A stretch of 64,000 nucleotides of DNA from IMGVR_UViG_3300045961_000282:124001-188000; one strand, 5' to 3'; shown: positions 2,701-19,599, counted from the stretch's first letter. Notes: generated by a model from the letters alone, not told the origin. Made by a program: numbers and translations.

Positions 2701-2728
2701 GCGTCCACGGTAGCCCACGGGTCAACCG

Positions 2729-3727: not shown

Positions 3728-5624
3728 GGACCCACTTCGCAATCGAGGGCACTCCGTTGCTGTCGATGGCGAACAGCATGTAGTAGCCGGAGGGCACCAT
3801 CCCGAGGGAGTCGGGCACGATGCCGGTGGCGATTCCATCCTTGACGGCAAGGTCCTCCAGCGCGATCGAGCGCTGCTCGGGGTCGGTCAGGTGAGTCACC
3901 GCGCTGGGGCGGATCAACCGCATCCGATCGATGTCGCCCGTGACCTCGACGCTGATCCGCTCCCCGCGCTCCACGCTGGCCGGGGCCGCAAGGATCTCGG
4001 GCCGCGGCGTCCCCGTGAACAGGTACGGCGGGCGGTAGACCTCGATGCGGGTCTCGAACGTGCCCGGCGTGTGATTGTGCTCGTCGCCGAACAGCGGGTC
4101 AGACCCAATCGTCATCACCGAGCCGTCAGGCAGCAGCGCCGCCGTCGAGTGGTAGTTGCGCCCGATGTGGTTCGGCGCCGCCTCGATCAGCGTGTTGGTC
4201 GCCGGGTCCAGCATCATGGTCAGGCGCAGGTCGGACAGGCTCCTGCCCCGGTAGTCCCGCGAGCCGCCCGTGAGCAGAGTCTTGTCGTCAGGCAGGGTCA
4301 CGGCGCTGATGTACCGGCCCGGCTCAGGGTAGTCCGGTCCCGGCTCGTAGCGCGGCGTGTCGCTGGCATCGAGGTCGACGATGTCGATCCGGTTGGTCGA
4401 CTTGTCGCTCTCGCCCACGCCGCCGCCGCCGATAATCGCCACGCGCTGATCCTGTGCTGGGGCGAGCATGACCGACGACGACGTCTCGTTCATCTCTGGA
4501 TCGCGCAGTCCATCGACGTCCTGCCATGAGTTGTCCGACACGTCCCACAGGCCGGGCTGGCGGCCCTCATCGGCAGCGCCGTAGCCCGTGCTCGACCCGG
4601 AGTAGAACAGCCGCCCATCGGCCATGCGGAACAGTGACGGGTAGGTCGGGAAGAACCGATCCACCTTCCCGTCGTAGTGCCACGTCCCGTCACCGACGTT
4701 GAAGACCTCGTTCTGCCCCTCAAGGATGTAGCCGTGCTCGTCGAGGCCGGACACCGCGATGATGTTGTCGCCGTTGAGCGACACGAGCGTCGGATACCAG
4801 CGGGCGAAGTTCATGTCCTCGGTCTTGATGTACTTGCGCTGCTCGACGGAGTAGATGTAGGACGAATCCAGCCCGGCGTAGTTCTGCTTGTCCATCGTGA
4901 TGACGTTCGACCAGCCGTACAGGTTCTGCTGCTCGGCGTTCGAGAGGCGGGTCAGGTCGATGCGCTCAGCGTGCTCGGTCATGGCGTATTCCTTGCCCTC
5001 TTCGACCGCCTCGACCCACACGTTGGCCTGCCCCGAGGTCCACTTCCCATCCACGTCGCGGGCAGCGGGGATCACCCGATCCTCGGTGGTCACGTACTCC
5101 ATGCCGTTGGCGCGGCGCCAGACGTCGCCCTTCTTGACCTCGAACGGCTCTCCGGACTCGTTCTTGATCCACAGCGCCCCCGCAGCCTTCTTGACGTTGT
5201 CGGGCAGCACCTCGTACTTGGAGGTTCCTCCGGCCACCAGTAGGTCGCCGTTGGGCAGGTAGGCGTGGCCACCGCAGAACAGGTCCTCGGGGGTGTCGAC
5301 CTTGGTCGTGTCTCCGGTGACCGGGTTCCACAGAACGGTCTCGAACGTGCCTGCCTCGAACGCCTTGCGGCTGTTCCCCGAGCCAGCCAGCAGCAGCACT
5401 TCGCCGGAATACAGCAGGGCCGTGTGGATCGCCCGCACGCGGTACTCGTCAGGCAGTTCGATGGTCTGCCACTGGCCGTGCTCGCGGATGTAGTCCGGGC
5501 GTCCCTCGCGGTAATCCTGATAGGCGCGGGCCCCTGCGGGCCCGATGACGACGGCGTTGATCGACAGAATTCCGACCACGGCGACCGCGGTCACTATCCG
5601 ATTTCTGGTCCGGGCTGAGATCAT
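3714..5624 (-). CDS. glxA: galactose oxidase-like copper radical oxidase (AA5), GlxA-like
   Basis: DLFCGGH (Cys), RWYPTL (Tyr), RNYHS (Tyr-His) and VTH (His) ligands; N-terminal membrane anchor; ATGA overlap with cslA. Confidence 0.9.
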   Translation of the reverse strand: MISARTRNRIVTAVAVVGILSINAVVIGPAGARAYQDYREGRPDYIREHGQWQTIELPDEYRVRAIHTALLYSGEVLLLAGSGNSRKAFEAGTFETVLWNPVTGDTTKVDTPEDLFCGGHAYLPNGDLLVAGGTSKYEVLPDNVKKAAGALWIKNESGEPFEVKKGDVWRRANGMEYVTTEDRVIPAARDVDGKWTSGQANVWVEAVEEGKEYAMTEHAERIDLTRLSNAEQQNLYGWSNVITMDKQNYAGLDSSYIYSVEQRKYIKTEDMNFARWYPTLVSLNGDNIIAVSGLDEHGYILEGQNEVFNVGDGTWHYDGKVDRFFPTYPSLFRMADGRLFYSGSSTGYGAADEGRQPGLWDVSDNSWQDVDGLRDPEMNETSSSVMLAPAQDQRVAIIGGGGVGESDKSTNRIDIVDLDASDTPRYEPGPDYPEPGRYISAVTLPDDKTLLTGGSRDYRGRSLSDLRLTMMLDPATNTLIEAAPNHIGRNYHSTAALLPDGSVMTIGSDPLFGDEHNHTPGTFETRIEVYRPPYLFTGTPRPEILAAPASVERGERISVEVTGDIDRMRLIRPSAVTHLTDPEQRSIALEDLAVKDGIATGIVPDSLGMVPSGYYMLFAIDSNGVPSIAKWVRVES

Positions 5625-7342
5625 GGAGCGGCCCTTTCAAGGCTTTGGGTGCTGATGATGTCGTCGTTGGACTTGCTGAGGTTCATGACCACCGGAGCAA
5701 GGCAGACGACGATCGCCAGCATCGCCCACATGCGCATCATGAAGTGGTCGTGGCCCAACGGAACGGATGCCACAAACGCGGAGGTCAGCAGTGCCCCCCA
5801 TGCCAGATGACGCGTCCGCCAGAACGTGGACATCCTCTCACGGCCCTGCGGTGCCGGTCCCTTCGGAGTGACATTGAACGCGCCGGGCTTGCGGCTGACT
5901 GCGTGCCACAGAGCCGTGACGTACAGCGGGGCCGACAGAATGGACACGGCCATCCCCGACATGCCGGACGAACCATGCTCCTCGTGCGGGGACACGTTGT
6001 GGCGGCGGTTCCAGAAGTAGATGCCCAACTGCAGTGCAGCGGCGTTGAGGTACAGCATCAGCCACAGACCCGCGGTGACCACGACGCTGCCGATGCCGGT
6101 GAGCAGGTACATCACGAGGTTGAAGGTGCCGATGATCCACGTCAGGGCGGCAGTCGGGTAGTAGGACATCAACATCATGTAGTGCACCCGGCGCCGCCAC
6201 GGCAGGGTAGGCATCAGGGTGCGGAACTGCCGGACCACCACGTCGTCGGTGCCGCGCGACCAGCGCACCTGCTGAGTGAAGTAATCGCCCCAAAGCGATG
6301 GACCTTCGCCGACTGCAAGCACGTCGGGGGTGTAGACCGACTTCCACTTGTTCCCTGTCGCCGGGTTGACCGACGCGTGCCAGACGATGCTGGTCGCGGC
6401 GTCCTCGGTGATGGAGTCCTGCAGCCCGCCGATCTCCATGAGTGCCGAGATCCGCACGGCGTTGTTGGTTCCGACGAACATTGCGCAGTCCCACGTGTTG
6501 GCCGCGCGCTGCAGCACGGAGTGGAACAGGTACTGCTGGCTCTCCGCGGCGCGGGTCACGAAGTTGTCGTAGTTGCCGTAGACCTGCGGGCCGACCACGA
6601 ACGCGACGTCGGGGTCACGGAAGTAGCCCAGCAACCGCTCGGCGAAGTTGGGCAGCGGCACGTGGTCAGTGTCGACCGAGATCCAGTAGTCGTAGTTGTA
6701 CCCGTGGGTGAACAGCCACGAGTTGTAGTTGCCGTGCTTGGTCTTGGCCTTGTACCGACCCTCAGCGGTGTTCCACTCCTCGATGCCCTTGCGCGAGAAG
6801 TGCCGCACGCCGATCTCGGCGCACATCGCCTTGACCTCGTCGTCGTCGCCCTCGTCGAGCACCCAGACGTCCAGAACACCGGAGTGCCTGATCTGCAGGG
6901 CGGCCTCGAGGGTCCGCCGCAGCATGTGCAGCGGTTCCTTGCCGGGCACGATTGTGGTGATAAAAGCCACTCGGCTGTCGGTTTCCGGCAGGACCGGAAT
7001 CGGGTCACGGGCGTGCACGGTGGCCATCGCCAACGTGCCGACGTTGATCAAGCGGAACGTCTCGATGGCTCCGATGAACACGATCATCGTGACGCTGACG
7101 GCGAGTTGCCAGCCACTCTGCCCCTGCGGGTAGTGACTGGGCCACATGAGCCAGATCAGGAACACCGACTGGAACAGCAGCGCTGCGCTGACCAGAAGGA
7201 TGGACCACAGGCGAGCCCTGCCGTGATTGAGTCGACGGTACTCAACAGTGTGCTCAGGACCTGCCTCAACGGGCTCACCGGCCAACTCGCTGTACCGGTC
7301 GTAGTCGTAGTGATACGTCTGCACGGTCCCCTCTTCCTGCAT
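5621..7342 (-). CDS. cslA: cellulose synthase-like processive GT2, CslA-like
   Basis: LDEG, KHGNYN, VDTDH, FVVGPQVYGN, ITED, QQVRW; multiple TM helices; N-terminal YDYDRYSELAG resembles Streptomyces CslA; start approximate. Confidence 0.9.
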   Translation of the reverse strand: MQEEGTVQTYHYDYDRYSELAGEPVEAGPEHTVEYRRLNHGRARLWSILLVSAALLFQSVFLIWLMWPSHYPQGQSGWQLAVSVTMIVFIGAIETFRLINVGTLAMATVHARDPIPVLPETDSRVAFITTIVPGKEPLHMLRRTLEAALQIRHSGVLDVWVLDEGDDDEVKAMCAEIGVRHFSRKGIEEWNTAEGRYKAKTKHGNYNSWLFTHGYNYDYWISVDTDHVPLPNFAERLLGYFRDPDVAFVVGPQVYGNYDNFVTRAAESQQYLFHSVLQRAANTWDCAMFVGTNNAVRISALMEIGGLQDSITEDAATSIVWHASVNPATGNKWKSVYTPDVLAVGEGPSLWGDYFTQQVRWSRGTDDVVVRQFRTLMPTLPWRRRVHYMMLMSYYPTAALTWIIGTFNLVMYLLTGIGSVVVTAGLWLMLYLNAAALQLGIYFWNRRHNVSPHEEHGSSGMSGMAVSILSAPLYVTALWHAVSRKPGAFNVTPKGPAPQGRERMSTFWRTRHLAWGALLTSAFVASVPLGHDHFMMRMWAMLAIVVCLAPVVMNLSKSNDDIISTQSLERAAP

Positions 7343-7445
7343 GACGTGAGTATGGACGGTTGCGCCAGCAGGCCTTCCCTGTCTGACGAGTTGCCAAACC
7401 CTACCACGATTTGGATCCCTGCTAGTCCGTGCTAGGGTTTGCCCC

Positions 7446-7658
7446 GTGAGTGACATGGACCGCGACGCAGCGGTGGCCGGGGCCCTGTTCCTTGGATTCG
7501 TCGGAACCATCAGCCTGACAGTGGGGATCGCCATACTGTTCGGAGCCGGGTGGGCGTTCGTCGCCTTCGGGGGGATCACCTTGGTCAATGCATGGCTCAT
7601 GGGGGTGCGGAAGAGCCGCAGCAACGAAACCCTGCTTTTCGCCAACACCAACAACTAG
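7446..7658 (+). CDS. small two-TM membrane protein (leaderless)
   Basis: TAGGGT -10 element 7 nt before the GTG; hydrophobic. Confidence 0.6.
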   Translation: MSDMDRDAAVAGALFLGFVGTISLTVGIAILFGAGWAFVAFGGITLVNAWLMGVRKSRSNETLLFANTNN

Positions 7659-7669
7659 GAGCAAGTCTC

Positions 7670-8020
7670 ATGGCACGTGAAGTTCAGATCATGACGTGGT
7701 GCGACCACTGTCTCAATGAGGAGAACCTGCAGGTCGAGGGCATGACGTACGTCGGGCTGAACAGCGCCGGGGCGCGCGTCGAGATCGACCTGTGCGCCGA
7801 GTGCGCCGAGTCCTTCCTCACCCCCGCCCTGTCGGCGCTGGACGCCTACGGGCGCGATGAGCCCAAGCCAAAGCGGCGCAAGCGCGTCGAGAGCCCGGCG
7901 CCCGCGGGCGGCCAGTGTCCCGACTGCGACAAGACCTTCCCGACCAAGCAGGCGCTGGGCATGCACCGCTGGCGTGCGCACAACGTCCCGGGCGAGGGTA
8001 AGGGCAAGAAGTCGGCCTGA
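7670..8020 (+). CDS. Lsr2-like dimerisation domain fused to a C2H2 zinc finger
   Basis: VEIDLCAEC..FL...LDAYGR resembles the Lsr2 N-domain; CPDCDKTFPTKQALGMHRWRAH is a canonical C2H2; RBS AGGAG. Confidence 0.7.
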   Translation: MAREVQIMTWCDHCLNEENLQVEGMTYVGLNSAGARVEIDLCAECAESFLTPALSALDAYGRDEPKPKRRKRVESPAPAGGQCPDCDKTFPTKQALGMHRWRAHNVPGEGKGKKSA

Positions 8021-8052
8021 CCAACACAACCACCACCTACAAGGGGGGATCT

Positions 8053-8670
8053 ATGCGTTTGATCGTTGCACCGCACGCCGATGACGAAGTGCTGGGATGT
8101 GGCGGCCTGCTGGCCAAGTACCCAGACGAGTGCTGGGTCGCCGTACTCTCGGACAAGAACGATGGTCGGATGACGGAGTTCTACCGGGCCAAGGGTGTTC
8201 TCAGGTACAAGCACAGCACCAAGGCTGACTTCGTCACCGGGGAACTGGCGGCACGGTCCCGTGAGGTCACGACGTGGCTGGATCAGTTGATCAAGCAGAT
8301 CAAGCCGAATGAGTTGTACCTGCCGACGCCGGGTGCACATCAGGACCACATCGCGGCCTACGAGTCGGGCGTCCGGGCGGCACGCCTGTCCTACACCAAT
8401 GGGGCGTGGTTCGTCCCCGCGGTGTTCCTGTACGAGATCCCGTCATACAGCACGGACCTGTACACGATCCCGTACCCGTGGAACCGCTTCGAGGTGCTCA
8501 CCGAGGAGCACATGGATGCCAAGGCGAAGGCCATCGAGGCCTACGCCTCACAGATGAACGGCGCGTTCAATCCTGCGCACTTCGCCCGCGAGCACGCTCG
8601 ATTCATCGGGGCGCAGCGCAATGTCGCTTATGCCGAACAGTTTGCGGTGGTCAGGGAGGTCCGCGCATGA
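8053..8670 (+). CDS. PIG-L/LmbE family N-deacetylase
   Basis: APHADDEVLGCGG and HQDH metal-binding motifs. Confidence 0.9.
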   Translation: MRLIVAPHADDEVLGCGGLLAKYPDECWVAVLSDKNDGRMTEFYRAKGVLRYKHSTKADFVTGELAARSREVTTWLDQLIKQIKPNELYLPTPGAHQDHIAAYESGVRAARLSYTNGAWFVPAVFLYEIPSYSTDLYTIPYPWNRFEVLTEEHMDAKAKAIEAYASQMNGAFNPAHFAREHARFIGAQRNVAYAEQFAVVREVRA

Positions 8671-9323
8671 TTCTTGCGGCACATCAGTTGAACTTCATGC
8701 CGTATTCCGGTTTCTGGTACAAGATGGAGAAGGCCGATCTGTTCGACCTTCGCTATCAGGCCCAGTACACCGAGAAGGGGTACATCCGCCGGGTCAAGAT
8801 GCGCGACGCGTGGTGCGCAGTTCCTGTTGTCGACAAGCCGAAGTACGAGCCGACCAATGAGGTCCGCATCGACATCGCCAAGGCGCGAACGCAGATCTGC
8901 AACACCATCAAGGGTCGGTACGCAGGCGCCCCGTACTACAAGCAGCGTGGCGGCGACCTGATCGATCGGATCCAGAGTCTGGACACCGGCTACCTGTGGG
9001 AGTTCAACCTCGAACTCATCCTGTACCTGCGCGATGTTCTCGGGATCCAAACCCCCCTGACACTTGGAGTGGATACCATCGGCGGCAAGGCCGAGGGGGT
9101 CCTGAGTTTCATGCGGGTTTACCCCGGGGTAGAGACTTACCTGTCAGGGATCGGCGCCAAGGCGTATATGGAGGACACGTCGATCTTCGACGAGGCGGGG
9201 ATCAAGATCGAGTGGTCGAGGCACCGCGCGGTCACGCACGATTCGGTCGTCACCCTTCTGATGGACTACGCCGACCCCATGGAAATCATCATGCTTGAGA
9301 ATGAAGGGGACCAGAATGTCTGA
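8667..9323 (+). CDS. WbqC-family protein
   Basis: AHQLNFMPYSGFWYKM..AD and YLSGIGAKAYM motifs; ATGA overlap. Confidence 0.8.
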   Translation: MILAAHQLNFMPYSGFWYKMEKADLFDLRYQAQYTEKGYIRRVKMRDAWCAVPVVDKPKYEPTNEVRIDIAKARTQICNTIKGRYAGAPYYKQRGGDLIDRIQSLDTGYLWEFNLELILYLRDVLGIQTPLTLGVDTIGGKAEGVLSFMRVYPGVETYLSGIGAKAYMEDTSIFDEAGIKIEWSRHRAVTHDSVVTLLMDYADPMEIIMLENEGDQNV

Positions 9324-9402
9324 TTCGTGCGCCCGTGGGTGCCGCGTGTTCTCGCGCAAGGAAAAGACGCAGGTGTGCATTGTCTGTGGAAAAGCAGAGT
9401 GA
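9316..9402 (+). CDS. 28-aa Cys-rich mini-ORF
   Basis: Overlaps the wbqC stop and the next GTG; CARGC and CIVC. Confidence 0.35.
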   Translation: MSDSCARGCRVFSRKEKTQVCIVCGKAE

Positions 9403-9536
9403 GTGATCGCCTGCACGTTTATGGTCACACTGAGGATTGCGCGTGTCTTGCGTGCTCCTTCCTGAATGCCATAGCCGCCGCGCCCGGGGAGCGGACGTCG
9501 GACAAGATCAAATACGTTTTAGGAGACAGTGAATGA
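9399..9536 (+). CDS. 45-aa Cys/His mini-ORF
   Basis: GTGA and ATGA overlaps bridge it to the dehydrogenase; HTEDCACLAC. Confidence 0.4.
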   Translation: MSDRLHVYGHTEDCACLACSFLNAIAAAPGERTSDKIKYVLGDSE

Positions 9537-10777
9537 GCAAGGTGCTGATAGTTGGGATGGGCTACGTCGGCCTGCCTATCGCCGTACGTGCCGCCGAGGT
9601 TGGCCACGAGGTCATCGGCGTGGACGTGAGTCAGGACAAGATCGACTCGATCGCCACTGGGATGTCCTACATCGAGGACGTCAGCGACGAGCGGCTGCAG
9701 GCCGTGGTTGCATCAGGGGCCCTGCGGGCCACCGACCTCAGTGAGCGACACTCCTTCGAGATCGCGCTGATCACCGTGCCGACGCCGGTCGACGCGATGA
9801 AGCGGCCCGACCTGCAGTTCATCGAGGCGGGGGCGAACTACGTCGCCTCCTGCATGAACGGCGGCGAGGTTGTAGTGCTGGAGTCCACCACGTACCCCGG
9901 CACCACCGAGGATGTCGTCGCCGAGCGCATTCGCCGGATCGCTGGGCTGGAGCCGGAGCGCGACTACATGCTCGGGTACTCGCCTGAGCGCATCAATCCC
10001 GGCGACTCGGTGAACACCTTCGACACGGTTCCCAAGATCGTGTCCGGCACCGATGCGGCCTCGCTGGCGAGGATCCAGTCGTTCTACGACACGCTGGTCC
10101 AGCGGACCGTCCCCGTGTCCTCGCCGCGCGCGGCCGAACTGGCCAAGGTGTTCGAGAACACGTTCGCTCAGGTCAACATCGCGCTGGTCAACGAACTGGC
10201 ATTGGTCTGCTCCGAGTTGGGCCTCGACGTCGATGAGGTTCTCGACGCCGCCGCCACCAAGGGGCACTCGATCATGCGGTTCCGTCCCGGCCCCGGTGTC
10301 GGTGGGCACTGCATCAGCGTCGACCCGCTGTACCTGACGTGGATGCGGCGCAACATGGCGGGCAAGGCGTTCCGGTTCGCCGAACTGGCCGATGAGATCA
10401 ACGGCGGCATGCCCGAGCACGTGGTTCACCGGGCCCGCTCGGTGCTCAACGACCACGGGGTTCCGATCTGGAACTCGCGCATCGGCGTGCTGGGGGTTGC
10501 CTACAAGCCCAACGTCGCCGACATCCGGGAGTCTCCGGCTCTGGTTCTGGTTGAGCGACTGCGCGAGACCGGCGCGGAAGTCTCCGTGTTCGATCCGCAC
10601 GTCAACACCGCTGAGGATGCTGAACTGGCGGCAAAGTCCGCGGGGTCGTTCGACCTGATGATCGTGGCCACCGATCACGACGACTTCGACTACGAGGCCA
10701 TCCACAAGGGTGCCCGTGTCATCCTCGACACACGCAACCGCTACCCTCGGGGCACGGCGCGGGTCCACAAGTTGTGA
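9533..10777 (+). CDS. nucleotide-sugar (UDP-HexNAc/UDP-Glc) 6-dehydrogenase, WecC/WbpA/TviB-type
   Basis: GMGYVG Rossmann motif, ESTTYPGTT, KVFENTF..VNIALVNE, GGHCI catalytic Cys. Confidence 0.92.
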   Translation: MSKVLIVGMGYVGLPIAVRAAEVGHEVIGVDVSQDKIDSIATGMSYIEDVSDERLQAVVASGALRATDLSERHSFEIALITVPTPVDAMKRPDLQFIEAGANYVASCMNGGEVVVLESTTYPGTTEDVVAERIRRIAGLEPERDYMLGYSPERINPGDSVNTFDTVPKIVSGTDAASLARIQSFYDTLVQRTVPVSSPRAAELAKVFENTFAQVNIALVNELALVCSELGLDVDEVLDAAATKGHSIMRFRPGPGVGGHCISVDPLYLTWMRRNMAGKAFRFAELADEINGGMPEHVVHRARSVLNDHGVPIWNSRIGVLGVAYKPNVADIRESPALVLVERLRETGAEVSVFDPHVNTAEDAELAAKSAGSFDLMIVATDHDDFDYEAIHKGARVILDTRNRYPRGTARVHKL

Positions 10778-10820
10778 CCGCTTCCAAGGGGGGGTGTCTG
10801 CTGTGACCCAAGAATTCCTC

Positions 10821-10931
10821 ATGTCCTACGGACAGATCACCATCATCGGCCTCGGGTCGTTGATAGGGCTGAGCGCGGTCCTGATCCATCGCGTGCGCAC
10901 TCGCCATCACAAGTACGGGAAGGGATCATGA
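10821..10931 (+). CDS. 36-aa single-TM peptide
   Basis: Hydrophobic segment followed by a basic tail; ATGA overlap with the GT2. Confidence 0.45.
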   Translation: MSYGQITIIGLGSLIGLSAVLIHRVRTRHHKYGKGS

Positions 10932-12265
10932 CTCCGATAGGTCGCAACACCCCGGCTCGCGGTCTGGGCATGGTGGCCAGCCTGATCTTCATCGGGCTGT
11001 TCATCGGCTACTTCTCATGGTCGGCCATGGGCTGGATCAACCAGAGCGGCGCATGGTTGCTGGTCGGTTTCTTTGCCTTCTTCGCCACCATCACGCTGGG
11101 GAACATGATCTCCGGGCTGTTCTGGAAGTCGTTCACCGACCTCCCGGTCCCCGACGCCCGCGTGGTGGCCATCGTGCCGATCTATGCGGAAAAGACCGAG
11201 CGGGTCCACAAGGTGGTGCTCTCGCTGATCCATCAGACTCGCCCGCCGGACCACATCTACGTGGTCGACGACGGCTCCGAGCCACCGCTGGTGGGCTTCG
11301 AGCACCCGCTGGTGACGTGGATCCGACAGGAGAACGCAGGCAAGCGCCACGCGCAGGCACGCGCACTGGCCGAGTTCGACCGCGATGAGTACGACCTGAT
11401 CCTCACTGTCGACTCGGATTCGGTGTTCGACGCCGATGCGGTTGAGCACCTGATGCGCCCGTTCAACCACTCGGACATCCATGCCTCGACGGCGATGATC
11501 TACACGTCGAACTGGCGGGCCAACCTGATGACCCGGTTCACCGACATCAACCTGCAGATCTCGTGCTTGCAGATGCGGATGCTCCGCTCGTGGATGGGTA
11601 TTGTTACGCCGACCTCGGGGGCCATCGCCATCTACCGGCCGTGGGTGTTCTTCGACAACCTCGACGACTACCTGACCTCAGGCAACATCGGCGACGACCG
11701 ACGGCTGTCGTTCTACGCGCTCATGAAGGGCCGTGTCGTCACGGTCAACGAGGCGGCCTGCGAGACGCACCTGCCCGAGACGCCGCGCGGCATTTTCAAG
11801 CAGCGCACCCGTTGGGCCAAGTCGGCATGGCTGGGAACTCCCTTCGTGTGGACCAACCTCAAGCCGCTGGTGGTGTTCTTCTACACCTACCCGCTGCTGT
11901 TCGCCCTGCTGTGGCCGCTGTCGGTGGCGTTCCTGTCGTGGATCTGGATCGCCTACGGCATCCCGTCGCTGATGTACGGCGTCGCCTTCTGGTTCGTCAC
12001 GTCGTTCACGATGACCGGGGCTGCCTATGCCCAGCGGCCCTCGATGCCGTTCGGGCAGAAGGTGCTGCAGGTCGGGCTGTCCCTGCTCTACCCGATCTGG
12101 GGTCTGATCCTGCTGCGTCCCGCGGCGTACAAGGCGCTGGCCACCGTCCGCGATCAGAGTTGGGGGACCCGTGGAGCCGATGCTCCTGAGCCTGAGATGG
12201 ACGGCGTGGCCCCGGCCCCATCTGGTGGGCGCGTGATCGGCCTGCCCAAGAGGACTGCCGCCTGA
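10928..12265 (+). CDS. processive GT2 of the hyaluronan synthase/NodC type
   Basis: DDGS, GKRHA, VDSDS, GDDRRL and QRTRW motifs; N- and C-terminal TM helices. Confidence 0.85.
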   Translation: MTPIGRNTPARGLGMVASLIFIGLFIGYFSWSAMGWINQSGAWLLVGFFAFFATITLGNMISGLFWKSFTDLPVPDARVVAIVPIYAEKTERVHKVVLSLIHQTRPPDHIYVVDDGSEPPLVGFEHPLVTWIRQENAGKRHAQARALAEFDRDEYDLILTVDSDSVFDADAVEHLMRPFNHSDIHASTAMIYTSNWRANLMTRFTDINLQISCLQMRMLRSWMGIVTPTSGAIAIYRPWVFFDNLDDYLTSGNIGDDRRLSFYALMKGRVVTVNEAACETHLPETPRGIFKQRTRWAKSAWLGTPFVWTNLKPLVVFFYTYPLLFALLWPLSVAFLSWIWIAYGIPSLMYGVAFWFVTSFTMTGAAYAQRPSMPFGQKVLQVGLSLLYPIWGLILLRPAAYKALATVRDQSWGTRGADAPEPEMDGVAPAPSGGRVIGLPKRTAA

Positions 12266-12323
12266 GCGCTCACGGGGCTACTGTGGACGTACCAGAACGG
12301 TCACCTCACCAAGGAGTACACCC

Positions 12324-13526
12324 ATGCCCTCATTTCGCGAGGTCATCACGTCCATCTCGGGCTTGACCCACTACTACGCGCTGGACGACAAGACCAAGGC
12401 CACTGACTTGGTCGGCAAGATCAACGGCAAGGTCAACGGCAACGTCATGTTCGGCGCCAACGGGGCGACGTTCGACGGCAAGTCCAGCATCGAACTGGCC
12501 AACAGCGCCGACTTCTCCCCGGCTGGCACGGCGTCCAAGGCCCTGACCATCATCGCCTTCCACACCGTCACCGACTGGAAGCGCCAGTCGCACAACAACG
12601 AGTACGTCCACTGGATGGGCAAGGGCCGCACAGGCGCCCACGAGTGGGTGTTCCGGTACTACATCGACGGTGGCAGCGGTGAGGCGGCGACCCGCAAGCG
12701 GCGCACCTCGTTCTACTCGTTCAACCCGGCGGGCGGTCTGGGCACCGGCTCGTACTTCCAAGACGACGACGCCGCGGGCGTCGAGCGGGTGATCGGCGGC
12801 ATGGTCTGGGGCAACTCAGCCAGTGGCTCGACGCAGATGTGGAAGAACGGCGTGATCCGCGACACCGACGCGCTGAGCACCTACTCGGTCAACCCCAAGC
12901 ACACCGACGCCCCCGTGTTCCTCGGGTCGCGTGGGGACAACACGGGCTTCCTCGTTGGTCGGCTGCGCCGGGTGGCCTTCTTCAACCGCCGCCTCACCGA
13001 GGCTGAGATGAAGAAGATCTACGACGCCCGCAACTTCGTCGAGGTCGAGGAGGCCGTGACGCCTCCGCCGGTCGTGACTCCTCCGGCGGTGCTCGGCGAT
13101 GTCTACGTCGGCGCCAGCAAGCGGGCGTACAACGGGAAGAACGCAGCGCGCGCCGCGGACACGCTGGTCGTCTTCGACGATGCGTATGGTTCGAAGACCG
13201 ACACCAACGAGTGGGGGGCCGAAGTCCTGATCGAGAAGGGCAAGGTCACCGCCGTCCTCGACCAGCGCACGGGCGCAGAGGGAGCCAAGAACCTCGCCAT
13301 CCCCAAGGGCGGGGTCGTGCTGTCCGGCCACGGAGAGGCTCGCACGTGGCTGCTGGAACACGCGAAGGTCGGTGTGGTGGCTTCGGTGGGGTCCCCGCCC
13401 GTGGCGCCCGCTCCTGACCTCTCCGCGCAGGCCAAGGCAATCCGGGCGCAGGCCGCCGCGCTGCGCAAAACCGCGGATGAACTGGATGCCACTGCGGCGT
13501 CCATCGAGAAGGAGACGAGTGGCTAG
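12324..13526 (+). CDS. LamG/concanavalin-A-like domain protein with a second carbohydrate-associated module and a coiled-coil tail
   Basis: YYALDD, FDGKSSI, FLVGRLRRVAFFNRRLT LamG pattern; IPKGGVVLSGHG module; no signal peptide. Confidence 0.65.
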   Translation: MPSFREVITSISGLTHYYALDDKTKATDLVGKINGKVNGNVMFGANGATFDGKSSIELANSADFSPAGTASKALTIIAFHTVTDWKRQSHNNEYVHWMGKGRTGAHEWVFRYYIDGGSGEAATRKRRTSFYSFNPAGGLGTGSYFQDDDAAGVERVIGGMVWGNSASGSTQMWKNGVIRDTDALSTYSVNPKHTDAPVFLGSRGDNTGFLVGRLRRVAFFNRRLTEAEMKKIYDARNFVEVEEAVTPPPVVTPPAVLGDVYVGASKRAYNGKNAARAADTLVVFDDAYGSKTDTNEWGAEVLIEKGKVTAVLDQRTGAEGAKNLAIPKGGVVLSGHGEARTWLLEHAKVGVVASVGSPPVAPAPDLSAQAKAIRAQAAALRKTADELDATAASIEKETSG

Positions 13527-14382
13527 GAGCACCATCCTGCGGGTGGGGGCGGCGACAGGCGCCGCCCTCGCCCTGCTGCTCACCCTGACCGCAGGCGTCT
13601 GGTCGCATCAGGACCGCACCGACGCCTTCAGCATCACGAACCTGTACCGCTCAGACCCCACAGGGCAGCGCTGGGCCGCCGACTGGACCCGGGAGTGGTC
13701 CAATGACCCATGGGTCGAGCGCGGCAGCAACAACGTGCGCTACCGCACCGAGAACGGTGTGCTGACCGTCACTGGGCCGACCAGTCGGCTCTACGTGCGC
13801 AATCCCGACATGAAGACCCAGTGGGGCAACGTCGAGGTGACCGTATACGGATACCGGGTCGCCGACGAGAACATCGGGTACTCCGGAATCGTCACATCGG
13901 CACGCACCAACCACGGCGTCTCGGATCCACTGGAATCCGCCCCGTGCGACTCTCGGGCCATCGCGGCACGGATGCGCTTCGATGGTTCCATTGACTTCGG
14001 AAAGGAAACCTCACATCCGACATGGGAGGCCGTTCCAGCCGGGATATTGTTCCCCGGCGGTCTGCCGTACAACAAGTGGATCGGCTACAAGCACGTCGTC
14101 TATGACATCCCCGGCGGGACCCGGCAGGAACTGTGGGTCGACCTCACCGAGGGCCGCAATGGCGGGACGTGGCGAAAGGTGGCGACCCACGACGACACCG
14201 GTCAGGTCGGCGAAGTCGCCTGTGCGCCCGACGTCGATCCCGCCCTGCCGCTGACCCTTGGCAAGCGCGACGGCTCCGAGAGTGGGCTGCCCAACCTCTC
14301 CGTGCTGTTGCGTGCCGATGGCGTGGATGACCTGCGCTACAAGTGGTTCTCCGTGCGCGACATCATTCCGCCGCGCGGCTGA
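13519..14382 (+). CDS. secreted Trp-rich beta-sandwich protein (possible carbohydrate-binding or lyase-like)
   Basis: Signal peptide; KWIGYKHVVY..ELWVD..WRKV; GTG start overlapping the previous stop. Confidence 0.55.
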   Translation: MARSTILRVGAATGAALALLLTLTAGVWSHQDRTDAFSITNLYRSDPTGQRWAADWTREWSNDPWVERGSNNVRYRTENGVLTVTGPTSRLYVRNPDMKTQWGNVEVTVYGYRVADENIGYSGIVTSARTNHGVSDPLESAPCDSRAIAARMRFDGSIDFGKETSHPTWEAVPAGILFPGGLPYNKWIGYKHVVYDIPGGTRQELWVDLTEGRNGGTWRKVATHDDTGQVGEVACAPDVDPALPLTLGKRDGSESGLPNLSVLLRADGVDDLRYKWFSVRDIIPPRG

Positions 14383-14392
14383 GATATGGGGC

Positions 14393-14428
14393 GGCCCCCC
14401 CTCGCATATCCGACGAGGAGGGGCCTTT
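14393..14428 (+). terminator. intrinsic terminator between convergent units
   Basis: ggccccccctcg..cgaggaggggcc followed by ttt. Confidence 0.6.
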
Positions 14429-14479
14429 GGTTATCCCATTAGCAGTGGGTTCCTGCTTCATCGTCCCGACGGCACTTGA

Positions 14480-14615
14480 AGTGACGGATCATTTTCAAGG
14501 TCGCGGCGCCCTGCCATTAGGCCACCGAGACATGGGGTGTTGCTGCGGTCGCACAGGGCAACCAGAGTCTCGGACAGGAATTGAACCTGCATCTCCGCGA
14601 GGAGAGTCCGTCACT
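14480..14615 (-). ncRNA. circularly permuted tRNA-like RNA #2 (YrlA/Y-RNA-like)
   Basis: Order is T-arm (GCAGG TTCAATT CCTGT), acceptor CCGAGAC/GTCTCGG closed by a loop, then D-arm; TCGCGG/CCGCGA stem; 9-bp terminal stem AGTGACGGA/TCCGTCACT. Confidence 0.75.
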
Positions 14616-14634: not shown

Positions 14635-14797
14635 GGTGGTGCTAAGACTGGAGCGAGAGCCTGAATCTGATGGGGGTCGCTGCCTCTACCGATTGGGCTA
14701 CGGACCCATGTGGTGGGCCCCGCAGGATTCGAACCTGCACTGTCACGACGTGTCCCTGAGTCTGAGCCTCAGCCTGAGTCTGTGCTCCATACCCACC
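14635..14797 (-). ncRNA. circularly permuted tRNA-like RNA #1 (YrlA/Y-RNA-like)
   Basis: T-arm GCAGG TTCGAAT CCTGC; GGGGCCC-A-CCA-CAT-GGGTCCG acceptor hairpin; Leu-like D-arm TAGCCCAATCGGTAGAGGC; GTCGT/GCGAC stem; outer TGGAGC/GCTCCA pairing; ends approximate. Confidence 0.75.
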
Positions 14798-14842: not shown

Positions 14843-15139
14843 TTACTCGCCGCACCAACCGTTCGGCGCGTCCCATGAGGGTACCGGCTGCAGCGCCGCC
14901 GCGGAGGCATCGCGCGACGTGCTGATGAAGCCCGCCCCTTCGATGCACAGGGCGACCATGGTCGGGTGCAGGTTCACGTTGGCGACCATCCGCACCTTGT
15001 CCGGGTCGGTGATAGGGACGCCCTTGAGGTCGCGGGCCTCCTGCGCGCTGCCGATCGGGCCGCCATCAGCGCAGGCGGCCACAGTCAGGCCGACCAGAGC
15101 GATGAGGGCTCCCGCGGCGACCGTGCGTGCGCGGTTCAT
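14843..15139 (-). CDS. small lipoprotein
   Basis: Signal peptide with lipobox VAAC; ATGA overlap. Confidence 0.7.
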   Translation of the reverse strand: MNRARTVAAGALIALVGLTVAACADGGPIGSAQEARDLKGVPITDPDKVRMVANVNLHPTMVALCIEGAGFISTSRDASAAALQPVPSWDAPNGWCGE

Positions 15140-15873
15140 CAGGCGCCCAGCAGGTAGTCGAAGATCTTCTTGCCGACGTGCACGTCGGTGATCTCCATCG
15201 AGTTGGCCTGCTCGCGGGCGAACTTGACCGCGTCCATCAGGGTGTCGACGCGAACGAGCAGTTCGGCGACCCGATCGGCCGGAACGGCACCGGAGAACTT
15301 GGTGGTCGACCAGTAGCCGACGACCTGATCCTCGTAATACATCTCGACCTGCGCCGGGTGCTTGTCGGTGGCCGGGGCCTTGACGTGGTTCTGCGGCACC
15401 TTCTTGGTCCGGGTGGTCTCGGTGACCTCGGTCGCCCACGCGCCCGCGGCGGCGTCGTGGTGCCACTTCTCTGAGGGATCCAGCGTCGGCAACTTCGAGA
15501 TGAAGGTGCGGATGTCGGTGATCTGCTTCTCGAGGAACAGCAGGCCGGTCACCGGGACATCGGCCAGCACGACGGTGCCGTCGACGACCACGTCGGCGCG
15601 GGCCTGCTGATTGGCGGCCTCCTTGGTCATGGTGACGTCGAAGAGCCGGGTCAGGTCGCGGCCGAGGTTGGCGAGGATCGTCTCGGCGTTCAACTGCACC
15701 AGCGTGGACTCCGAGGGCAGCCGGTCGCCCTCGTCGTCCTTGGGCCGGTAGGTGCGCGAGATGCCCGCGAACCGGGCTTCCTTCTGCAGCGCGTGGTAGG
15801 CGTCGGAGACTGCGCGGTGCGCGTGGGCCCGCACGCCCTTCTCGACAGCGAGGATCTGGTTCAACTTGGTCAC
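15139..15873 (-). CDS. conserved hypothetical protein (KLNQI.AVEKG / KHPAQVE family, common in actinobacteria)
   Basis: Recognisable family motifs GISRTYRPKDDEG, LLFLEKQ, TKKVP.NHVKA.AT.KHPAQV; own promoter and RBS. Confidence 0.8.
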   Translation of the reverse strand: MTKLNQILAVEKGVRAHAHRAVSDAYHALQKEARFAGISRTYRPKDDEGDRLPSESTLVQLNAETILANLGRDLTRLFDVTMTKEAANQQARADVVVDGTVVLADVPVTGLLFLEKQITDIRTFISKLPTLDPSEKWHHDAAAGAWATEVTETTRTKKVPQNHVKAPATDKHPAQVEMYYEDQVVGYWSTTKFSGAVPADRVAELLVRVDTLMDAVKFAREQANSMEITDVHVGKKIFDYLLGA

Positions 15874-15917
15874 TGTGTCATTCCTCTTTCAGGTGGTGCT
15901 GGGAACTGTATCACGGC

Positions 15918-16520
15918 TCAGGGGGTGGCAATCACCGAGGTGTCCGTGGTGATCACCGAGGTGTCCACCGAGGCCGTCTCGCCCAGCACATAGGACGACA
16001 CCGAGCGGGTCAGCCCGGCATAGGTGCTCGACGTCTCCGTGGCGGAGTAGGACACCGGGGCGAACCCGACCGACGCGCCGGTCCGAACCGCCGAGAGGTC
16101 TGAGGCGAGGAACACGAACTCCCACCCGTCGGCCTTCGCGGCGTCGATCAGGTCGGACACGGACTCCTTGGTGTACTCCCGTGAGGCGTTCTCGCCGCCG
16201 TCGGTGACGATGACCATCACGACCTTCTCGGCCGGGTTCTTGGCCACGTGCTTGCGGGTGGAGGACACCGCCTTGCCGATCGCGTCCAGCAGCGCCGTGG
16301 CGCCGCGCGGCGTCAAGGTGTAGCCCGGCCACGCCGAGGCAACCACGGGCTTCACGGCTTCGGTGATCTTGTCGTCGAAGTCCCACAGGGCGATCGACAC
16401 GTCGTCGTTGCCCGCGAACTCCGCGACGAACGACTCGATGCCGCCCTGCGCGTCCTCGCGGGTCATCTGCATCGACCCAGAGCGATCGATCACCAAGCAC
16501 ACGTGCGCGGATGCTGTCAT
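15918..16520 (-). CDS. stand-alone von Willebrand factor A domain protein
   Basis: MIDAS DRSGS, TALLDAIG, TDGGENAS. Confidence 0.85.
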   Translation of the reverse strand: MTASAHVCLVIDRSGSMQMTREDAQGGIESFVAEFAGNDDVSIALWDFDDKITEAVKPVVASAWPGYTLTPRGATALLDAIGKAVSSTRKHVAKNPAEKVVMVIVTDGGENASREYTKESVSDLIDAAKADGWEFVFLASDLSAVRTGASVGFAPVSYSATETSSTYAGLTRSVSSYVLGETASVDTSVITTDTSVIATP

Positions 16521-16864
16521 TGCGTCTCCTCGAATATCTCCACTGGGATTCCCGCCTCGCGGGCCAGATCGATGGTCATGTTGGTCCCCCGGGAACCGGG
16601 GCGCGGGAAGGCCAGCACCACATCGGGGCGCAGGGCGACCATCTCTGCGTTGCGCAGGTAGCCCGCCCGCTTTCCGAACTGGTTCCAGTCTGCCGGATGA
16701 GGGTCCTCGGGGACCCCGGTCATCTCACACCACTCGTGGGCGTACTGGTCGGCGCCGGTCGGGCACCGGCCGTTGATCACCAGCGTCGGGCTCTTGGCAG
16801 CCAGCGCGTCGTGCACGGTCTGGATGTCCGTCCAGTCCCGTGAACCAGTCACCATCACCCGCAT
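16517..16864 (-). CDS. SLOG-family (DUF2493/YspA-like) protein
   Basis: VTGSRDW, TGAD, ADW..GKRAG.LRN.EM, SRGT. Confidence 0.85.
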   Translation of the reverse strand: MRVMVTGSRDWTDIQTVHDALAAKSPTLVINGRCPTGADQYAHEWCEMTGVPEDPHPADWNQFGKRAGYLRNAEMVALRPDVVLAFPRPGSRGTNMTIDLAREAGIPVEIFEETQ

Positions 16865-16920
16865 TTGCAATCCTTTTGAAATCACTACCCCCACTCACCC
16901 CACATGCTACGGGCCGTGTC

Positions 16921-16967: not shown

Positions 16968-17243
16968 TCAGACGGGGCGATCCGGGGACTTCAGGGCGAT
17001 GTAGCCCGCCACCACCGAGGACAGGGTGACCCCTGCCCACGCGACAGCCGTGTAGACCACGGCGCCGAGTACGGCGAACAGGGCGGGCCACGCATCGCCG
17101 AAGCCGCGGTCGAACAGCACGCTCAGCCACGTGATCAGCCCACCGAGGATGAACAGTGCGCCCACCACGACGACGACGGTGGCCAGTGTGCGGAAGATCC
17201 GCGACACCGCCTCGGCGCGACTGGCCACATTCAGTTCTGCCAT
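16968..17243 (-). CDS. two-TM membrane protein
   Basis: Hydrophobicity pattern; RBS AGGAGG. Confidence 0.7.
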   Translation of the reverse strand: MAELNVASRAEAVSRIFRTLATVVVVVGALFILGGLITWLSVLFDRGFGDAWPALFAVLGAVVYTAVAWAGVTLSSVVAGYIALKSPDRPV

Positions 17244-17286
17244 GACAACCTCCTAGGGGAAATGTTGGTCACGACTTTATGGCATT

Positions 17287-18753: not shown

Positions 18754-18809
18754 GGAACTCACGGTAGCCCACGAAGGGCCGTGAACCATACGGTACCGAC
18801 GAACTTTCT

Positions 18810-19238: not shown

Positions 19239-19599
19239 CGCTGTCCATCCTCGGCAGGACGTAGAACTCCGTGCGCCGCAGCACCTCTTGGGCACGCAGC
19301 ACCTCGATGGAGATCCGCTGAGCGGTCTCCCGCTTCTCCCACATGAACAATTGCTTTCGCGCGACCCGGCACAGATCCATTGCCTTCGCCAGCGATTTCA
19401 GTGCTACAGCACGTACCTCATCCTCGACGTAGGTCGGACCAGCAATGAACGCCCCGCGGGAGATGGTGTCGCTGACTTCGGCCAGCATCATCTCCGCCGC
19501 CCACACCTGCGCGTCGGAGTCGGCCGTAGTCAGTTCACCGAAACTCAGCAGCCCAGTAGCCGTGTCCAACTGCGCCACCAGCGCTGCGCTGTCGTTCAC
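19231..19599 (-). CDS. hypothetical helical protein
   Basis: GTGA overlap chain. Confidence 0.55.
   Translation of the reverse strand: MNDSAALVAQLDTATGLLSFGELTTADSDAQVWAAEMMLAEVSDTISRGAFIAGPTYVEDEVRAVALKSLAKAMDLCRVARKQLFMWEKRETAQRISIEVLRAQEVLRRTEFYVLPRMDSDA

Follow-up and report, generated by a model that had tools for sequence, protein, structure and literature searches.

A large phage of actinobacteria carries a conserved gene set, shared with its likely host group, that looks built to make infected cells secrete a modified, acidic, chitin- or hyaluronan-like sugar polymer, and one enzyme pair in this set resembles the deacetylase and cysteine ligase of bacterial thiol synthesis. To examine this gene set we analysed a stretch of 64,000 nucleotides (IMGVR_UViG_3300045961_000282:124001-188000, hereafter the window), which belongs to a 206-kb viral contig from freshwater sediment. 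The six genes described in an earlier note were confirmed: all six open reading frames lie on the + strand with the high-GC coding pattern (GC3 0.82-0.90), and their coordinates and those of the neighbouring features are given in Table 1. Some details had to be corrected, however. The note had described the run as largely translationally coupled, but coupling is only partial: PIG-L and WbqC overlap by 4 nt, the mini-ORF and GT2 by 4 nt, and LamG and the last gene by 8 nt, whereas 209 bp separate WbqC from the dehydrogenase and 58 bp separate GT2 from LamG. Moreover, the 42-aa single-helix ORF had been missed, the last gene starts at the GTG at 13519 rather than at 13372, the phage LamG protein has no signal peptide, and the dehydrogenase is not of the HasB (UDP-glucose) type.

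Table 1. Features of the glycan gene set and its borders (positions in the window)
Position	Strand	Feature	Remarks
7670-8020	+	116-aa protein with a Zn-ribbon-like region and a C2H2 zinc finger	Directly upstream of PIG-L; AGGAG ribosome-binding site; may be co-transcribed
8053-8670	+	PIG-L/LmbE-family zinc de-N-acetylase, 205 aa	Cytoplasmic
8667-9323	+	WbqC-family protein, 218 aa	Start overlaps the PIG-L stop (ATGA); predicted HUP/class I aminoacyl-tRNA-synthetase-like fold
9324-9532		Non-coding gap, 209 bp	Possible internal promoter (not shown)
9533-10777	+	NAD-dependent nucleotide-sugar 6-dehydrogenase, 414 aa	UDP-N-acetylhexosamine clade (WecC/Cap5O/TviB-like)
10803-10931	+	Mini-protein, 42 aa: one transmembrane helix plus a basic HRxRTRxxKY tail	GTG start; GGGGGG ribosome-binding site; stop overlaps the GT2 ATG; proposed accessory subunit of the synthase
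10928-12265	+	Integral-membrane GT2 synthase, 445 aa	2 N-terminal and about 3 C-terminal helices; HAS/NodC/chitin-synthase clade
12324-13526	+	LamG jelly-roll protein, 400 aa	LamG domain (residues 1-240), ~90-aa module (residues ~259-350, window 13098-13373), C-terminal amphipathic helix
13519-14382	+	287-aa protein, N-terminal signal peptide or anchor helix and predicted ConA/galectin-like beta-sandwich	GTG start
14391-14430	+	GC-rich hairpin (GGCCCC..GGGGCC) followed by UUUGGUU	Just after the last stop codon; terminator-like end of the unit

To assign the proteins to families, we first compared them with Pfam and TIGRFAM profiles. The deacetylase matched PIG-L (PF02585) at 44.2 bits against a cut-off of 28.2, and its motifs P7-H8-x-D10-D11-E12 and H96-Q97-D98-H99 are invariant in 13 copies. 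Its closest specific models are those of the thiol pathways, but all scored well below their equivalog cut-offs (BshB1, TIGR04001, 34.5 bits against 182.5, E-value 1.7e-8 over the full length; BshB2 24 against 195; MshB 19 against 224), indicating that these are its nearest relatives and not the same family. The WbqC protein matched PF08889 at 100.1 bits against 21.3. The dehydrogenase matched TIGR03026 at 388 bits against 189.8 and its three Pfam domains at 1e-37, 2e-25 and 6e-21, and contains the catalytic-Cys motif GGHCISVDP. It scored 249 bits on the archaeal UDP-ManNAc dehydrogenase model (cut-off 750), 236 on WecC (459) and 218 on TviB (592), compared to 143 bits (TuaD) and 29 bits for UDP-glucose dehydrogenase models. 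The PDB ranking agreed, with 4r16 at 2e-62 and Cap5O at 5e-58 against about 1e-36 for UDP-glucose dehydrogenase. The clade is thus clear, but since every equivalog cut-off was missed the scores do not fix the substrate.

With regard to the synthase, the Pfam models Glyco_tranf_2_3 and Glyco_trans_2_3 scored above cut-off. The motifs GDDR and QRTRW are invariant among 17 homologues, and VVDDGS, TVDSDS, GDDRRLSFY, QRTRW and the C-terminal SWGTRG are invariant or nearly so, which places the enzyme in the HAS/NodC/chitin-synthase clade. The best specific models were NodC (TIGR04242, 97.3 bits against 550) and PgaC (TIGR03937, 52.2 bits against 422.3), both far below their cut-offs. The single sequence found nothing in the PDB, while a profile of the 17 sequences matched Xenopus HAS1 (8smm) at 7e-16 through the WGT motif, but only over residues 134-421.

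The LamG match was weak but was confirmed by an atlas search. In contrast to its cellular orthologues, which carry a Tat signal, the phage protein has none; its ~90-aa module recurs in the CE4 and lysyl-oxidase-like proteins of related loci. The last protein gave no family match, but its AF2 model (pLDDT 91) matched YesU (1oq1, Z 16.9), CBM66, ERGIC-53, phage receptor-binding proteins and GH16/PL7/PL14 enzymes (Z 12-13) in Foldseek and VIA-align searches, suggesting either a glycan-binding or a glycan-cleaving partner; it has 559 homologues, many as a domain of larger proteins. The mini-protein is homologous to the C-terminal membrane anchor of the CE4 deacetylase of cellular cassettes, and equivalent mini-ORFs precede the GT2 in three of the phage contigs introduced below (L002, L021 and L022), although a complex prediction for mini-protein and GT2 gave no support for an interaction. 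The zinc-finger protein upstream matched zf-C2H2_6 at 3e-5, just below cut-off, and is not conserved upstream of the cassette in relatives, as L021 and L022 have different genes there. The gap between WbqC and the dehydrogenase showed no exceptional folding (z -1.5) and no Rfam hit, and is absent in L021 and L022, where the two genes overlap. The folding energy of the terminal hairpin was -27.8 kcal/mol (z -1.8, which is modest).

Next we examined how the gene set is distributed. It is not private to this virus: the same order, at 40-55% identity, occurs in chromosomes of Kineococcus, Nocardioides, Marmoricola and Aeromicrobium, and in at least four other large actinophage contigs (designated L002, L020, L021 and L022). 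The order PIG-L-WbqC-DH-CE4-GT2-LamG-ConA-like is conserved in 12+ cellular loci with ordinary chromosomal flanks, and the order of the gene set recurs in more than 20 independent loci, which is far beyond chance. In the GT2 tree, two deep clades contain phage and metagenome sequences but no cellular ones, while one phage nests among cellular sequences. One relative carries an intein in the dehydrogenase. Relatives also add a secreted CE4 deacetylase; the phage of the window encodes one about 108 kb away on its own contig. The CE4 enzymes have signal peptides and intact motifs, and one relative carries a LysM-bearing CE4 paralogue, all of which points to an exported GlcNAc-type polymer.

The AF2 model of WbqC (pLDDT 94.9) was then aligned structurally with VIA-align. 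The best match was BshC (4wbd, Z 13.2, rmsd 3.4, 209 of 218 residues or 96% of the length), followed by LysRS-I (Z 10.7), GluRS (Z 7-8) and MshC (Z 6.0), and an atlas shape search returned the WbqC cluster at TM 0.92. It should be underlined that this link is at the level of predicted fold only: no PDB chain was hit by sequence at E<=1, Foldseek found nothing, and BshC's own ligase activity is not known to have been reconstituted in vitro. The invariant H6-Q7 lies at the strand-1/helix-A junction, where HIGH sits in class I enzymes, but this is a positional inference. In line with an amino-acid ligase acting after a deacetylase, the PIG-L-WbqC pair is a coupled module in other glycan clusters, and WbqC-GNAT fusions exist that mirror the step from MshC to MshD. 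However, one such pair lies in a phage replication-module neighbourhood without any synthase, so its substrate need not be the polymer precursor.

Together, these results are best explained by a synthase-dependent extracellular glycan pathway that large actinophages share with Actinomycetota such as Kineococcus and Nocardioides, although we consider this explanation no more than about as likely as not. In this view, the dehydrogenase would oxidise a UDP-N-acetylhexosamine (UDP-GlcNAc or UDP-ManNAc) to its uronic acid, and the cytoplasmic PIG-L enzyme would remove the N-acetyl group from a GlcNAc-type precursor. The translationally coupled WbqC enzyme would then use ATP to ligate an amino acid onto the freed amine, parallel to BshB then BshC, or MshB then MshC. 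The membrane GT2, together with the one-helix mini-subunit, would polymerise and export a GlcNAc-containing acidic chain, and outside the cell the secreted CE4 deacetylase, the anchored ConA-like protein and LamG/90-aa-module proteins would trim or bind the polymer. Expressed during infection, the pathway would re-coat the host surface. Whereas the gene identities, motifs, folds (predicted for WbqC and the ConA-like protein), synteny and phylogeny follow directly from our analysis, the substrates, amino-acid activation by WbqC, the order of the steps, the structure of the polymer, the processivity of the synthase, its role in infection and the benefit to the phage are inferred in the absence of biochemical or expression data, and the sequence was found only in the source DNA run.

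The interpretation given in the earlier note, an undescribed acidic amino-sugar polymer that is N-deacetylated and then re-acylated, is therefore supported only in part. The clade of the synthase, the WecC-type dehydrogenase and the viral nature of the contig held, and the idea of deacetylation followed by re-acylation gained independent support from the predicted WbqC fold, the affinity of PIG-L to BshB/MshB and the WbqC-GNAT fusions. In contrast, the operon is not a virus-specific, divergent one but a conserved actinobacterial cassette also found in several phages, and the proposed hasA/hasB logic holds only loosely because there is no UDP-glucose dehydrogenase. The proposed two-polymer capsule rests on an adjacency to the csl operon (cslA-glxA-cslZ) that none of the other phage or cellular loci shares, and the phage LamG protein lacks an export signal.

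Among the alternatives, the one that survives best, although we regard it as rather unlikely, is that the functions are split. The GT2, dehydrogenase and CE4 would make an acidic chitin- or chitosan-like polymer on their own, as proposed for the chlorovirus and fungal CHSL-UNGD-CDA cluster, while PIG-L-WbqC would be a separate module acting on another GlcNAc-bearing molecule, such as a lipid-linked wall precursor or a mycothiol-type small molecule. The pair indeed occurs without the synthase or dehydrogenase in three further loci (L023, L024 and L025), the algal-virus and fungal analogue has no PIG-L or WbqC (PMC4059230), and the 209-bp gap separates the pair from the rest in the window. However, the pair accompanies the dehydrogenase and GT2 in every one of more than 20 cassette loci across cellular and phage lineages, it overlaps the dehydrogenase start in L021 and L022, and no GT4 (BshA/MshA-like) gene is present in the cassette.

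Less likely still, the GT2 may be a non-processive NodC-type synthase, with PIG-L in the role of NodB, deacetylating the terminal residue, and WbqC in that of NodA, re-acylating it, to give a short decorated oligosaccharide rather than a capsule. NodC is the best-scoring specific model and aligns over nearly the full length (residues 78-415), all three enzymes are cytoplasmic or membrane-bound, and the deacetylase-plus-acyl-adding logic is the same. Against this, the NodC score is far below its cut-off, no NodIJ-type exporter is present, the conserved secreted CE4, ConA-like, LysM and module proteins imply an extracellular polymer substrate, and the best solved relative is a processive HAS.

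Plain hyaluronan production by a HasA/HasB pair seems improbable. It is suggested by the automatic JGI label of hyaluronan synthase on many homologues, the profile match to Xenopus HAS1 and the chlorovirus precedent, but the dehydrogenase scores far better against UDP-N-acetylhexosamine dehydrogenases than against UDP-glucose dehydrogenases, and the extra PIG-L, WbqC and CE4 genes have no role in hyaluronan synthesis. Finally, modification of virion proteins or phage DNA, an alternative raised in the note itself, is very unlikely: although the phage LamG copies lack export signals and carry a new C-terminal helix, LamG and ConA-like folds occur in phage receptor-binding proteins and one PIG-L-WbqC pair sits near phage replication genes, the GT2 is a polytopic membrane synthase, the identical cassette sits in bacterial chromosomes with no phage genes around it, and the CE4 and ConA-like proteins carry signal peptides or anchors.

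The closest published analogue is the uncharacterised cluster of a CHS-like synthase, a UDP-GlcNAc 6-dehydrogenase (UNGD) and a polysaccharide deacetylase in chloroviruses, phaeoviruses and fungi (PMC4059230, PMC5122149, PMC7053769). The three-gene core is the same in kind (a HAS/chitin-synthase-like GT2, a UDP-N-acetylhexosamine dehydrogenase and a CE4 deacetylase), it is carried by large DNA viruses and shared horizontally with cellular genomes, and its product is likewise unknown. The gene content matches in L020, L022 and all cellular loci, while in the phage of the window the CE4 is unlinked. That cluster belongs to a eukaryotic and algal-virus lineage, and has no PIG-L, WbqC, LamG, ConA-like or mini-TM partners. 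The resemblance noted here is one of gene content and not of established orthology.

With class I hyaluronan synthase and HasB (the streptococcal has operon; chlorovirus A98R and UDP-glucose dehydrogenase) the cassette shares a single membrane GT2 with GDDR, QxxRW and WGT(R/S) motifs, which in the has system both polymerises and exports, its pairing with a nucleotide-sugar dehydrogenase, and a viral precedent for coating the host. It differs in the type of dehydrogenase, in the extra precursor-editing and extracellular enzymes, and in the merely partial profile match to HAS. In the NodABC lipochitooligosaccharide and PgaABCD/IcaADBC PNAG systems, a GlcNAc-polymerising membrane GT2 likewise works with a CE4 deacetylase (NodB, PgaB, IcaB), and the small membrane partner of the synthase (PgaD, IcaD) is a possible analogue of the 42-aa mini-protein; however, no NodA is present here, CE4 is found only in relatives or elsewhere on the contig, and the dehydrogenase implies an acidic sugar that is absent from PNAG and Nod factors.

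In bacillithiol and mycothiol biosynthesis, a PIG-L/LmbE deacetylase frees the 2-amino group of a GlcNAc moiety and a class I aaRS-like enzyme then ligates an amino acid to it. The cassette lacks a BshA/MshA glycosyltransferase, WbqC has no sequence hit to BshC or MshC and is, at 218 aa, a bare catalytic domain, and the context is a polysaccharide synthase and not thiol metabolism. The WbqC of E. coli O121 and Shigella dysenteriae 7, from which the family takes its name, belongs to a Wzx/Wzy O-antigen context with a Qui4N acceptor and is not known to have been characterised biochemically either. Both proteins nevertheless belong to PF08889, and that O-unit carries an N-acetyl-glycyl amino sugar, which fits an aminoacyl-ligase role.

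To define the cassette at sequence level, we first examined the base composition of the window, which has 61-69% G+C and in which true genes stand out by very high third-position G+C. Six such ORFs lie on the + strand within the cassette (see the table below). Searches with Pfam and NCBIfam models named the first four as PIG-L (44 bits, cut-off 28), WbqC (100 bits, cut-off 21), a nucleotide-sugar dehydrogenase (TIGR03026, 388 bits, cut-off 190) and a family-2 glycosyltransferase (GT2), for which the best specific models, NodC (97 bits) and PgaC (52 bits), both scored far below their cut-offs. The fifth ORF is a LamG jelly roll, for which the Pfam hit was weak but was confirmed by an atlas feature and shape search, whereas the sixth had no family match. 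The observation made in the earlier note, that of a glycan gene run at this position, is thus confirmed, although reading of the junctions led to several corrections. PIG-L and WbqC overlap by ATGA, but WbqC and the dehydrogenase are separated by 209 non-coding bases, a gap that is specific to this phage. A 42-codon ORF with a GTG start and a GGGGGG ribosome-binding site encodes one transmembrane helix and a basic tail, and ends in the ATGA that starts the synthase. The gap from the synthase to the LamG gene is 58 bp, and the last gene, which begins with a signal peptide or anchor helix, overlaps the LamG stop by 8 nt. A GC-rich hairpin followed by UUUGGUU comes after the last stop codon, and a zinc-finger ORF precedes PIG-L. 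A scan for promoters and terminators gave nothing above the shuffled expectation, the fold of the 209-bp gap was unremarkable, and ARAGORN found no tRNA next to the cassette. An independent assembly of the source run matched positions 7500-9764, 10153-11338 and 11341-13400 without any difference.

Coordinates of the cassette, its neighbours and related features
Sequence	Position	Strand	Feature
Window	1576-7654	-	Divergent operon comprising the next four genes
Window	5621-7654	-	CslA-like GT2
Window	3714-5624	-	GlxA-like radical copper oxidase
Window	2729-3850	-	GH6
Window	1576-2718	-	GH5 cellulase
Window	7670-8020		116-aa C2H2 zinc-finger ORF
Window	8053-14382	+	Six ORFs of the cassette, PIG-L to last protein
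Window	10803-10931		42-codon ORF, mini-protein
Window	13098-13373		~90-aa module of the LamG protein
Window	13519		GTG start of the last gene
Window	14478-14614	-	Weak Y-RNA-like (YrlA) match
Window	~14700-14790		tRNA-like T-arm/acceptor stretch
Window	15139-16894	-	Convergent block: DUF7873 (367 bits), small vWA protein, SLOG/YAcAr protein
Window	51644-54226	+	860-aa MmeI-type fused restriction-modification enzyme or methyltransferase (MmeI_N, helicase spacer and MTase domains)
L011 (Aeromicrobium sp. Root472D3)	17124-20654		Second partial copy: PIG-L, WbqC, dehydrogenase, CE4
L022 (phage-type contig)	7486-9864		Dehydrogenase with intein (Hint plus LAGLIDADG domains, 792 aa in total)
L024 (phage replication-gene neighbourhood)	5762-7002		Coupled PIG-L-WbqC pair
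L026 (same contig as the window, about 108 kb upstream)	8001-9401		CE4 polysaccharide deacetylase (P0309)

The window is part of the IMG/VR contig UViG_3300045961_000282, which is 206 kb long and derives from a freshwater sediment metagenome. Its large terminase is 52% identical to that of Actinomycetia phage DSL-LC01 and about 42% identical to those of ~190-kb Microbacterium phages, and the host is therefore an actinobacterium, although nothing more precise can be said. A search of sequencing runs returned only the source DNA sample and no RNA, so that expression of the cassette is inferred. Directly downstream of the cassette lies the convergent block with DUF7873. The same flank contains a YrlA match of 29 bits (E 0.0045, below the gathering score) and a second, tRNA-like stretch in which ARAGORN calls no tRNA. 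No Ro60 gene is present in the window, whereas in the relative L021 (see below) a Ro60/TROVE gene sits right next to the cassette.

To determine whether the gene set occurs elsewhere, a point that the earlier note had proposed to check in other phages, we searched for homologues of the synthase and compared their surroundings. Megablast of the 6.3-kb region against 50,697 phage records found no match, and tblastn of the GT2 found only one distant Streptomyces phage glycosyltransferase. In contrast, the synthase has homologues at 58-88% identity on metagenome contigs and at about 50% identity in Kineococcus, Cryptosporangium, Nocardioides and Marmoricola. Seventeen genome loci and three viral loci were retrieved and searched with all window proteins. 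They share one order, namely PIG-L, WbqC, dehydrogenase, an extra ~345-aa gene, synthase, LamG and last protein, with identities of 40-55%. The extra gene encodes a CE4 polysaccharide deacetylase with a signal peptide and a C-terminal membrane anchor ending in YRxxTRGxRY. The flanks of the Aeromicrobium and Kineococcus loci are ordinary chromosomal genes, and the partial copy in Aeromicrobium sp. Root472D3 lies about 4 kb downstream of the full cassette. Four more phage-type contigs carry the cassette: L002 (105 kb), L020 (177 kb, with Dit, a tail lysozyme and PolA nearby), L021 (196 kb) and L022, a close phage relative with an intein inside the dehydrogenase. In the source run of the window, the independent assembly breaks inside this same gene at 9765-10152, which may reflect strain variation there.

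A maximum-likelihood tree of 41 synthases gave three well-supported groups. Clade A contains the window, L022, L002 and 11 metagenome sequences, clade B contains L021 and 5 metagenome sequences, and clade C contains all 12 cellular sequences with the phage L020 nested inside. One contig, L012, is labelled as a Sphingomonas paucimobilis MAG, but its synthase is sister to that of Nocardioides rubriscoriae on very short branches, and it is probably a mis-binned actinobacterial contig. The phage copies therefore come from at least two origins, and two lineages appear to be old phage residents, which argues for a function selected during infection.

In clades A and B, the position between the dehydrogenase and the synthase holds only an ORF of 42-64 aa, whose helix and basic tail align with the C-terminal anchor of the cellular CE4. 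In L022, a CE4 without that anchor follows the synthase. We first concluded that the phage of the window had lost the CE4 deacetylase, but this was rejected after a profile scan found one on the same contig, outside the window. This enzyme, which stands alone among small hypothetical genes, has a signal peptide, intact TFDD/HSxxH motifs and two copies of a ~90-aa module, and is 62% identical to the L022 enzyme. Thus, the anchor has been kept as a separate gene that is translationally coupled to the synthase. We infer that it is an accessory subunit of the synthase, comparable to IcaD or PgaD, although a complex prediction of the GT2 with the mini-protein scored 0.00, which is no evidence either way.

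The synthase carries every signature of the HAS/NodC/chitin-synthase clade (VVDDGS, TVDSDS, GDDRRLSFY, QRTRW and a C-terminal SWGTRG), all of which are invariant or nearly so. A phmmer search of the PDB with the GT2, WbqC and the last protein found nothing, but a profile of 17 synthase sequences returned Xenopus hyaluronan synthase 1 as the best solved relative (7e-16), aligned through the WGT motif. The synthase is thus a member of the clade but not of any characterised subfamily. The dehydrogenase clearly belongs with the UDP-N-acetylhexosamine dehydrogenases, as judged by scores of 249 and 236 bits on UDP-ManNAc DH models, 218 bits on TviB, and E-values of 2e-62 for PDB 4r16 and 5e-58 for Cap5O, whereas UDP-glucose dehydrogenases scored much lower (143 bits and about 1e-36). 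However, it reached no equivalog cut-off, so that these scores do not decide between UDP-GlcNAc and UDP-ManNAc, and no epimerase is part of the cassette. PIG-L keeps both zinc/catalytic motifs in all 13 copies aligned, and its nearest specific models are BshB1, BshB2 and MshB.

For WbqC a confident structural model was obtained (pLDDT 94.9). Foldseek against the PDB gave no hit better than E 0.3, and only an exhaustive structural alignment against 48,161 chains produced a match, with BshC of Bacillus subtilis first (Z 13.2, 209 of 218 residues aligned), followed by class I lysyl-tRNA synthetase (Z 10.7), glutamyl-tRNA synthetases (Z 7-8) and MshC (Z 6.0). For comparison, typical best scores for unmatched models are Z 7-8. 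An atlas shape search showed a WbqC cluster of about 1,000 members, many of them from phages, and a second cluster in which WbqC is fused to a GNAT acetyltransferase. In thiol biosynthesis, BshB and MshB are PIG-L-family enzymes that free the amine of a GlcNAc moiety, BshC and MshC are class I aaRS-like enzymes that ligate cysteine to that amine, and MshD, a GNAT, then acetylates it. The coupled PIG-L-WbqC pair is therefore best read as catalysing de-N-acetylation followed by ATP-dependent amino-acid ligation, an activity inferred from the predicted fold and from this parallel. The same coupled pair was also found in a bacterial glycan cluster with GT2, GT11 and ABC-transporter genes, next to GT87 genes, and in the phage replication-gene neighbourhood of L024 (SSB, PD-(D/E)XK, HNH, ParB), where no synthase is nearby. 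It is thus a portable two-enzyme module.

The last protein is predicted to be a ConA/galectin-like sandwich (pLDDT 91), with best matches to YesU (Z 16.9), CBM66 and ERGIC-53, and to GH16, PL7 and PL14 at Z 12-13. A lyase or hydrolase assignment was considered, but the fold cannot separate a lectin from an enzyme. The protein has 559 homologues, often as one domain of a larger protein. In the LamG protein, the C-terminal ~90-aa module (..VLSGHGxAxxWL..) recurs in the CE4 and in the lysyl-oxidase-like proteins of related loci, being shared among these clusters in L002, L020, L021, L022 and cellular loci. Lysyl-oxidase-like genes accompany the cassette in many relatives but not in the window. 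The module has no Pfam family or recognisable structural relative, and is probably a targeting or binding module. Kineococcus LamG orthologues start with a Tat signal (SRRxFL), whereas all phage copies lack it, and the clade A and B copies add a conserved C-terminal amphipathic helix. The phage LamG may therefore be cytoplasmic until lysis, or attached to something else.

Both PIG-L and WbqC lack export signals, and synthases of this clade extrude their product as it is made. The editing pair should therefore act on a cytoplasmic precursor, most simply the UDP-sugar, in a logic like that of LpxC/LpxD, which deacetylate and then re-acylate a UDP-sugar. The dehydrogenase would supply the uronic acid, and the synthase with its mini-subunit would polymerise and export the chain, while the secreted CE4, the anchored ConA-like protein and the module-bearing proteins would act outside the cell. 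A LysM-bearing CE4 paralogue in L020 fits a GlcNAc-type polymer. It should be underlined that the gene content, motifs, gene order and tree come directly from the analysis, whereas the order of steps, the amino acid used, the sugar sequence and the chain length, as well as the enzymatic activities, export and expression during infection, are all inferred. The benefit to the phage is speculation, possibilities including surface masking against superinfection, aggregation and protection. Among the alternatives, it is possible, though not likely, that the PIG-L-WbqC pair serves another acceptor, and it is more doubtful that the product is a short Nod-factor-like oligosaccharide. Plain hyaluronan, and even more so modification of virions or DNA, are unlikely.

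A further-reaching reading, which we consider only a tentative possibility, is that large actinophages have long maintained a complete pathway, as suggested by the two deep clades with no cellular members, that makes infected cells export an N-aminoacylated, uronic-acid-containing chitin-like polymer not yet described chemically. In this view, WbqC would define a new, minimal family of ATP-dependent aminoacyl-sugar ligases descended from the class I aaRS/BshC fold, which would give this widespread but uncharacterised family, common in phages, its first mechanistic assignment, and the pathway would be a bacterial-virus counterpart of the chlorovirus hyaluronan and chitin coats. Virus-directed synthesis of a host surface polymer is established for chloroviruses but hardly documented for phages. 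Here, a whole synthase-dependent pathway is conserved across several lineages of large actinophages and their probable host phylum, which makes it a tractable candidate for studying how phages remodel the infected cell surface, for example to exclude other phages, cause aggregation or resist desiccation. The BshB/BshC-like reading of the PIG-L-WbqC pair also gives a testable function to WbqC, a family found in many O-antigen and envelope clusters and in many phages.

The interpretation in the earlier note is partly supported. The neighbouring cslA-glxA-GH6-GH5 genes are real and represent the Streptomyces cslA-glxA-cslZ arrangement carried by a phage, but none of the other cassette loci has them within 10 kb, and the proposed two-polymer capsule is therefore a feature of this one phage at most. 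Literature searches on WbqC, on phage cslA/glxA and on actinophage polysaccharide synthases found no paper describing the actinobacterial or actinophage cassette, a fold assignment for WbqC, or a phage-borne cslA-glxA operon. Synthase-dependent exopolysaccharide pathways are as such already known, and what the present one adds is its long-standing carriage by large phages and a mechanistic lead for the WbqC family. The closest published analogue is the cluster of a CHS-like synthase, a UDP-GlcNAc dehydrogenase and a polysaccharide deacetylase that is shared by chloroviruses, phaeoviruses and fungi and whose product is still unknown (PMC4059230, PMC5122149, PMC7053769), a product that the present cassette may also explain. 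In gene content, the cassette has the same three-gene core, with the CE4 gene of this phage lying about 108 kb away, and adds to it the PIG-L-WbqC pair, the mini-subunit, and the LamG and ConA-like partners.
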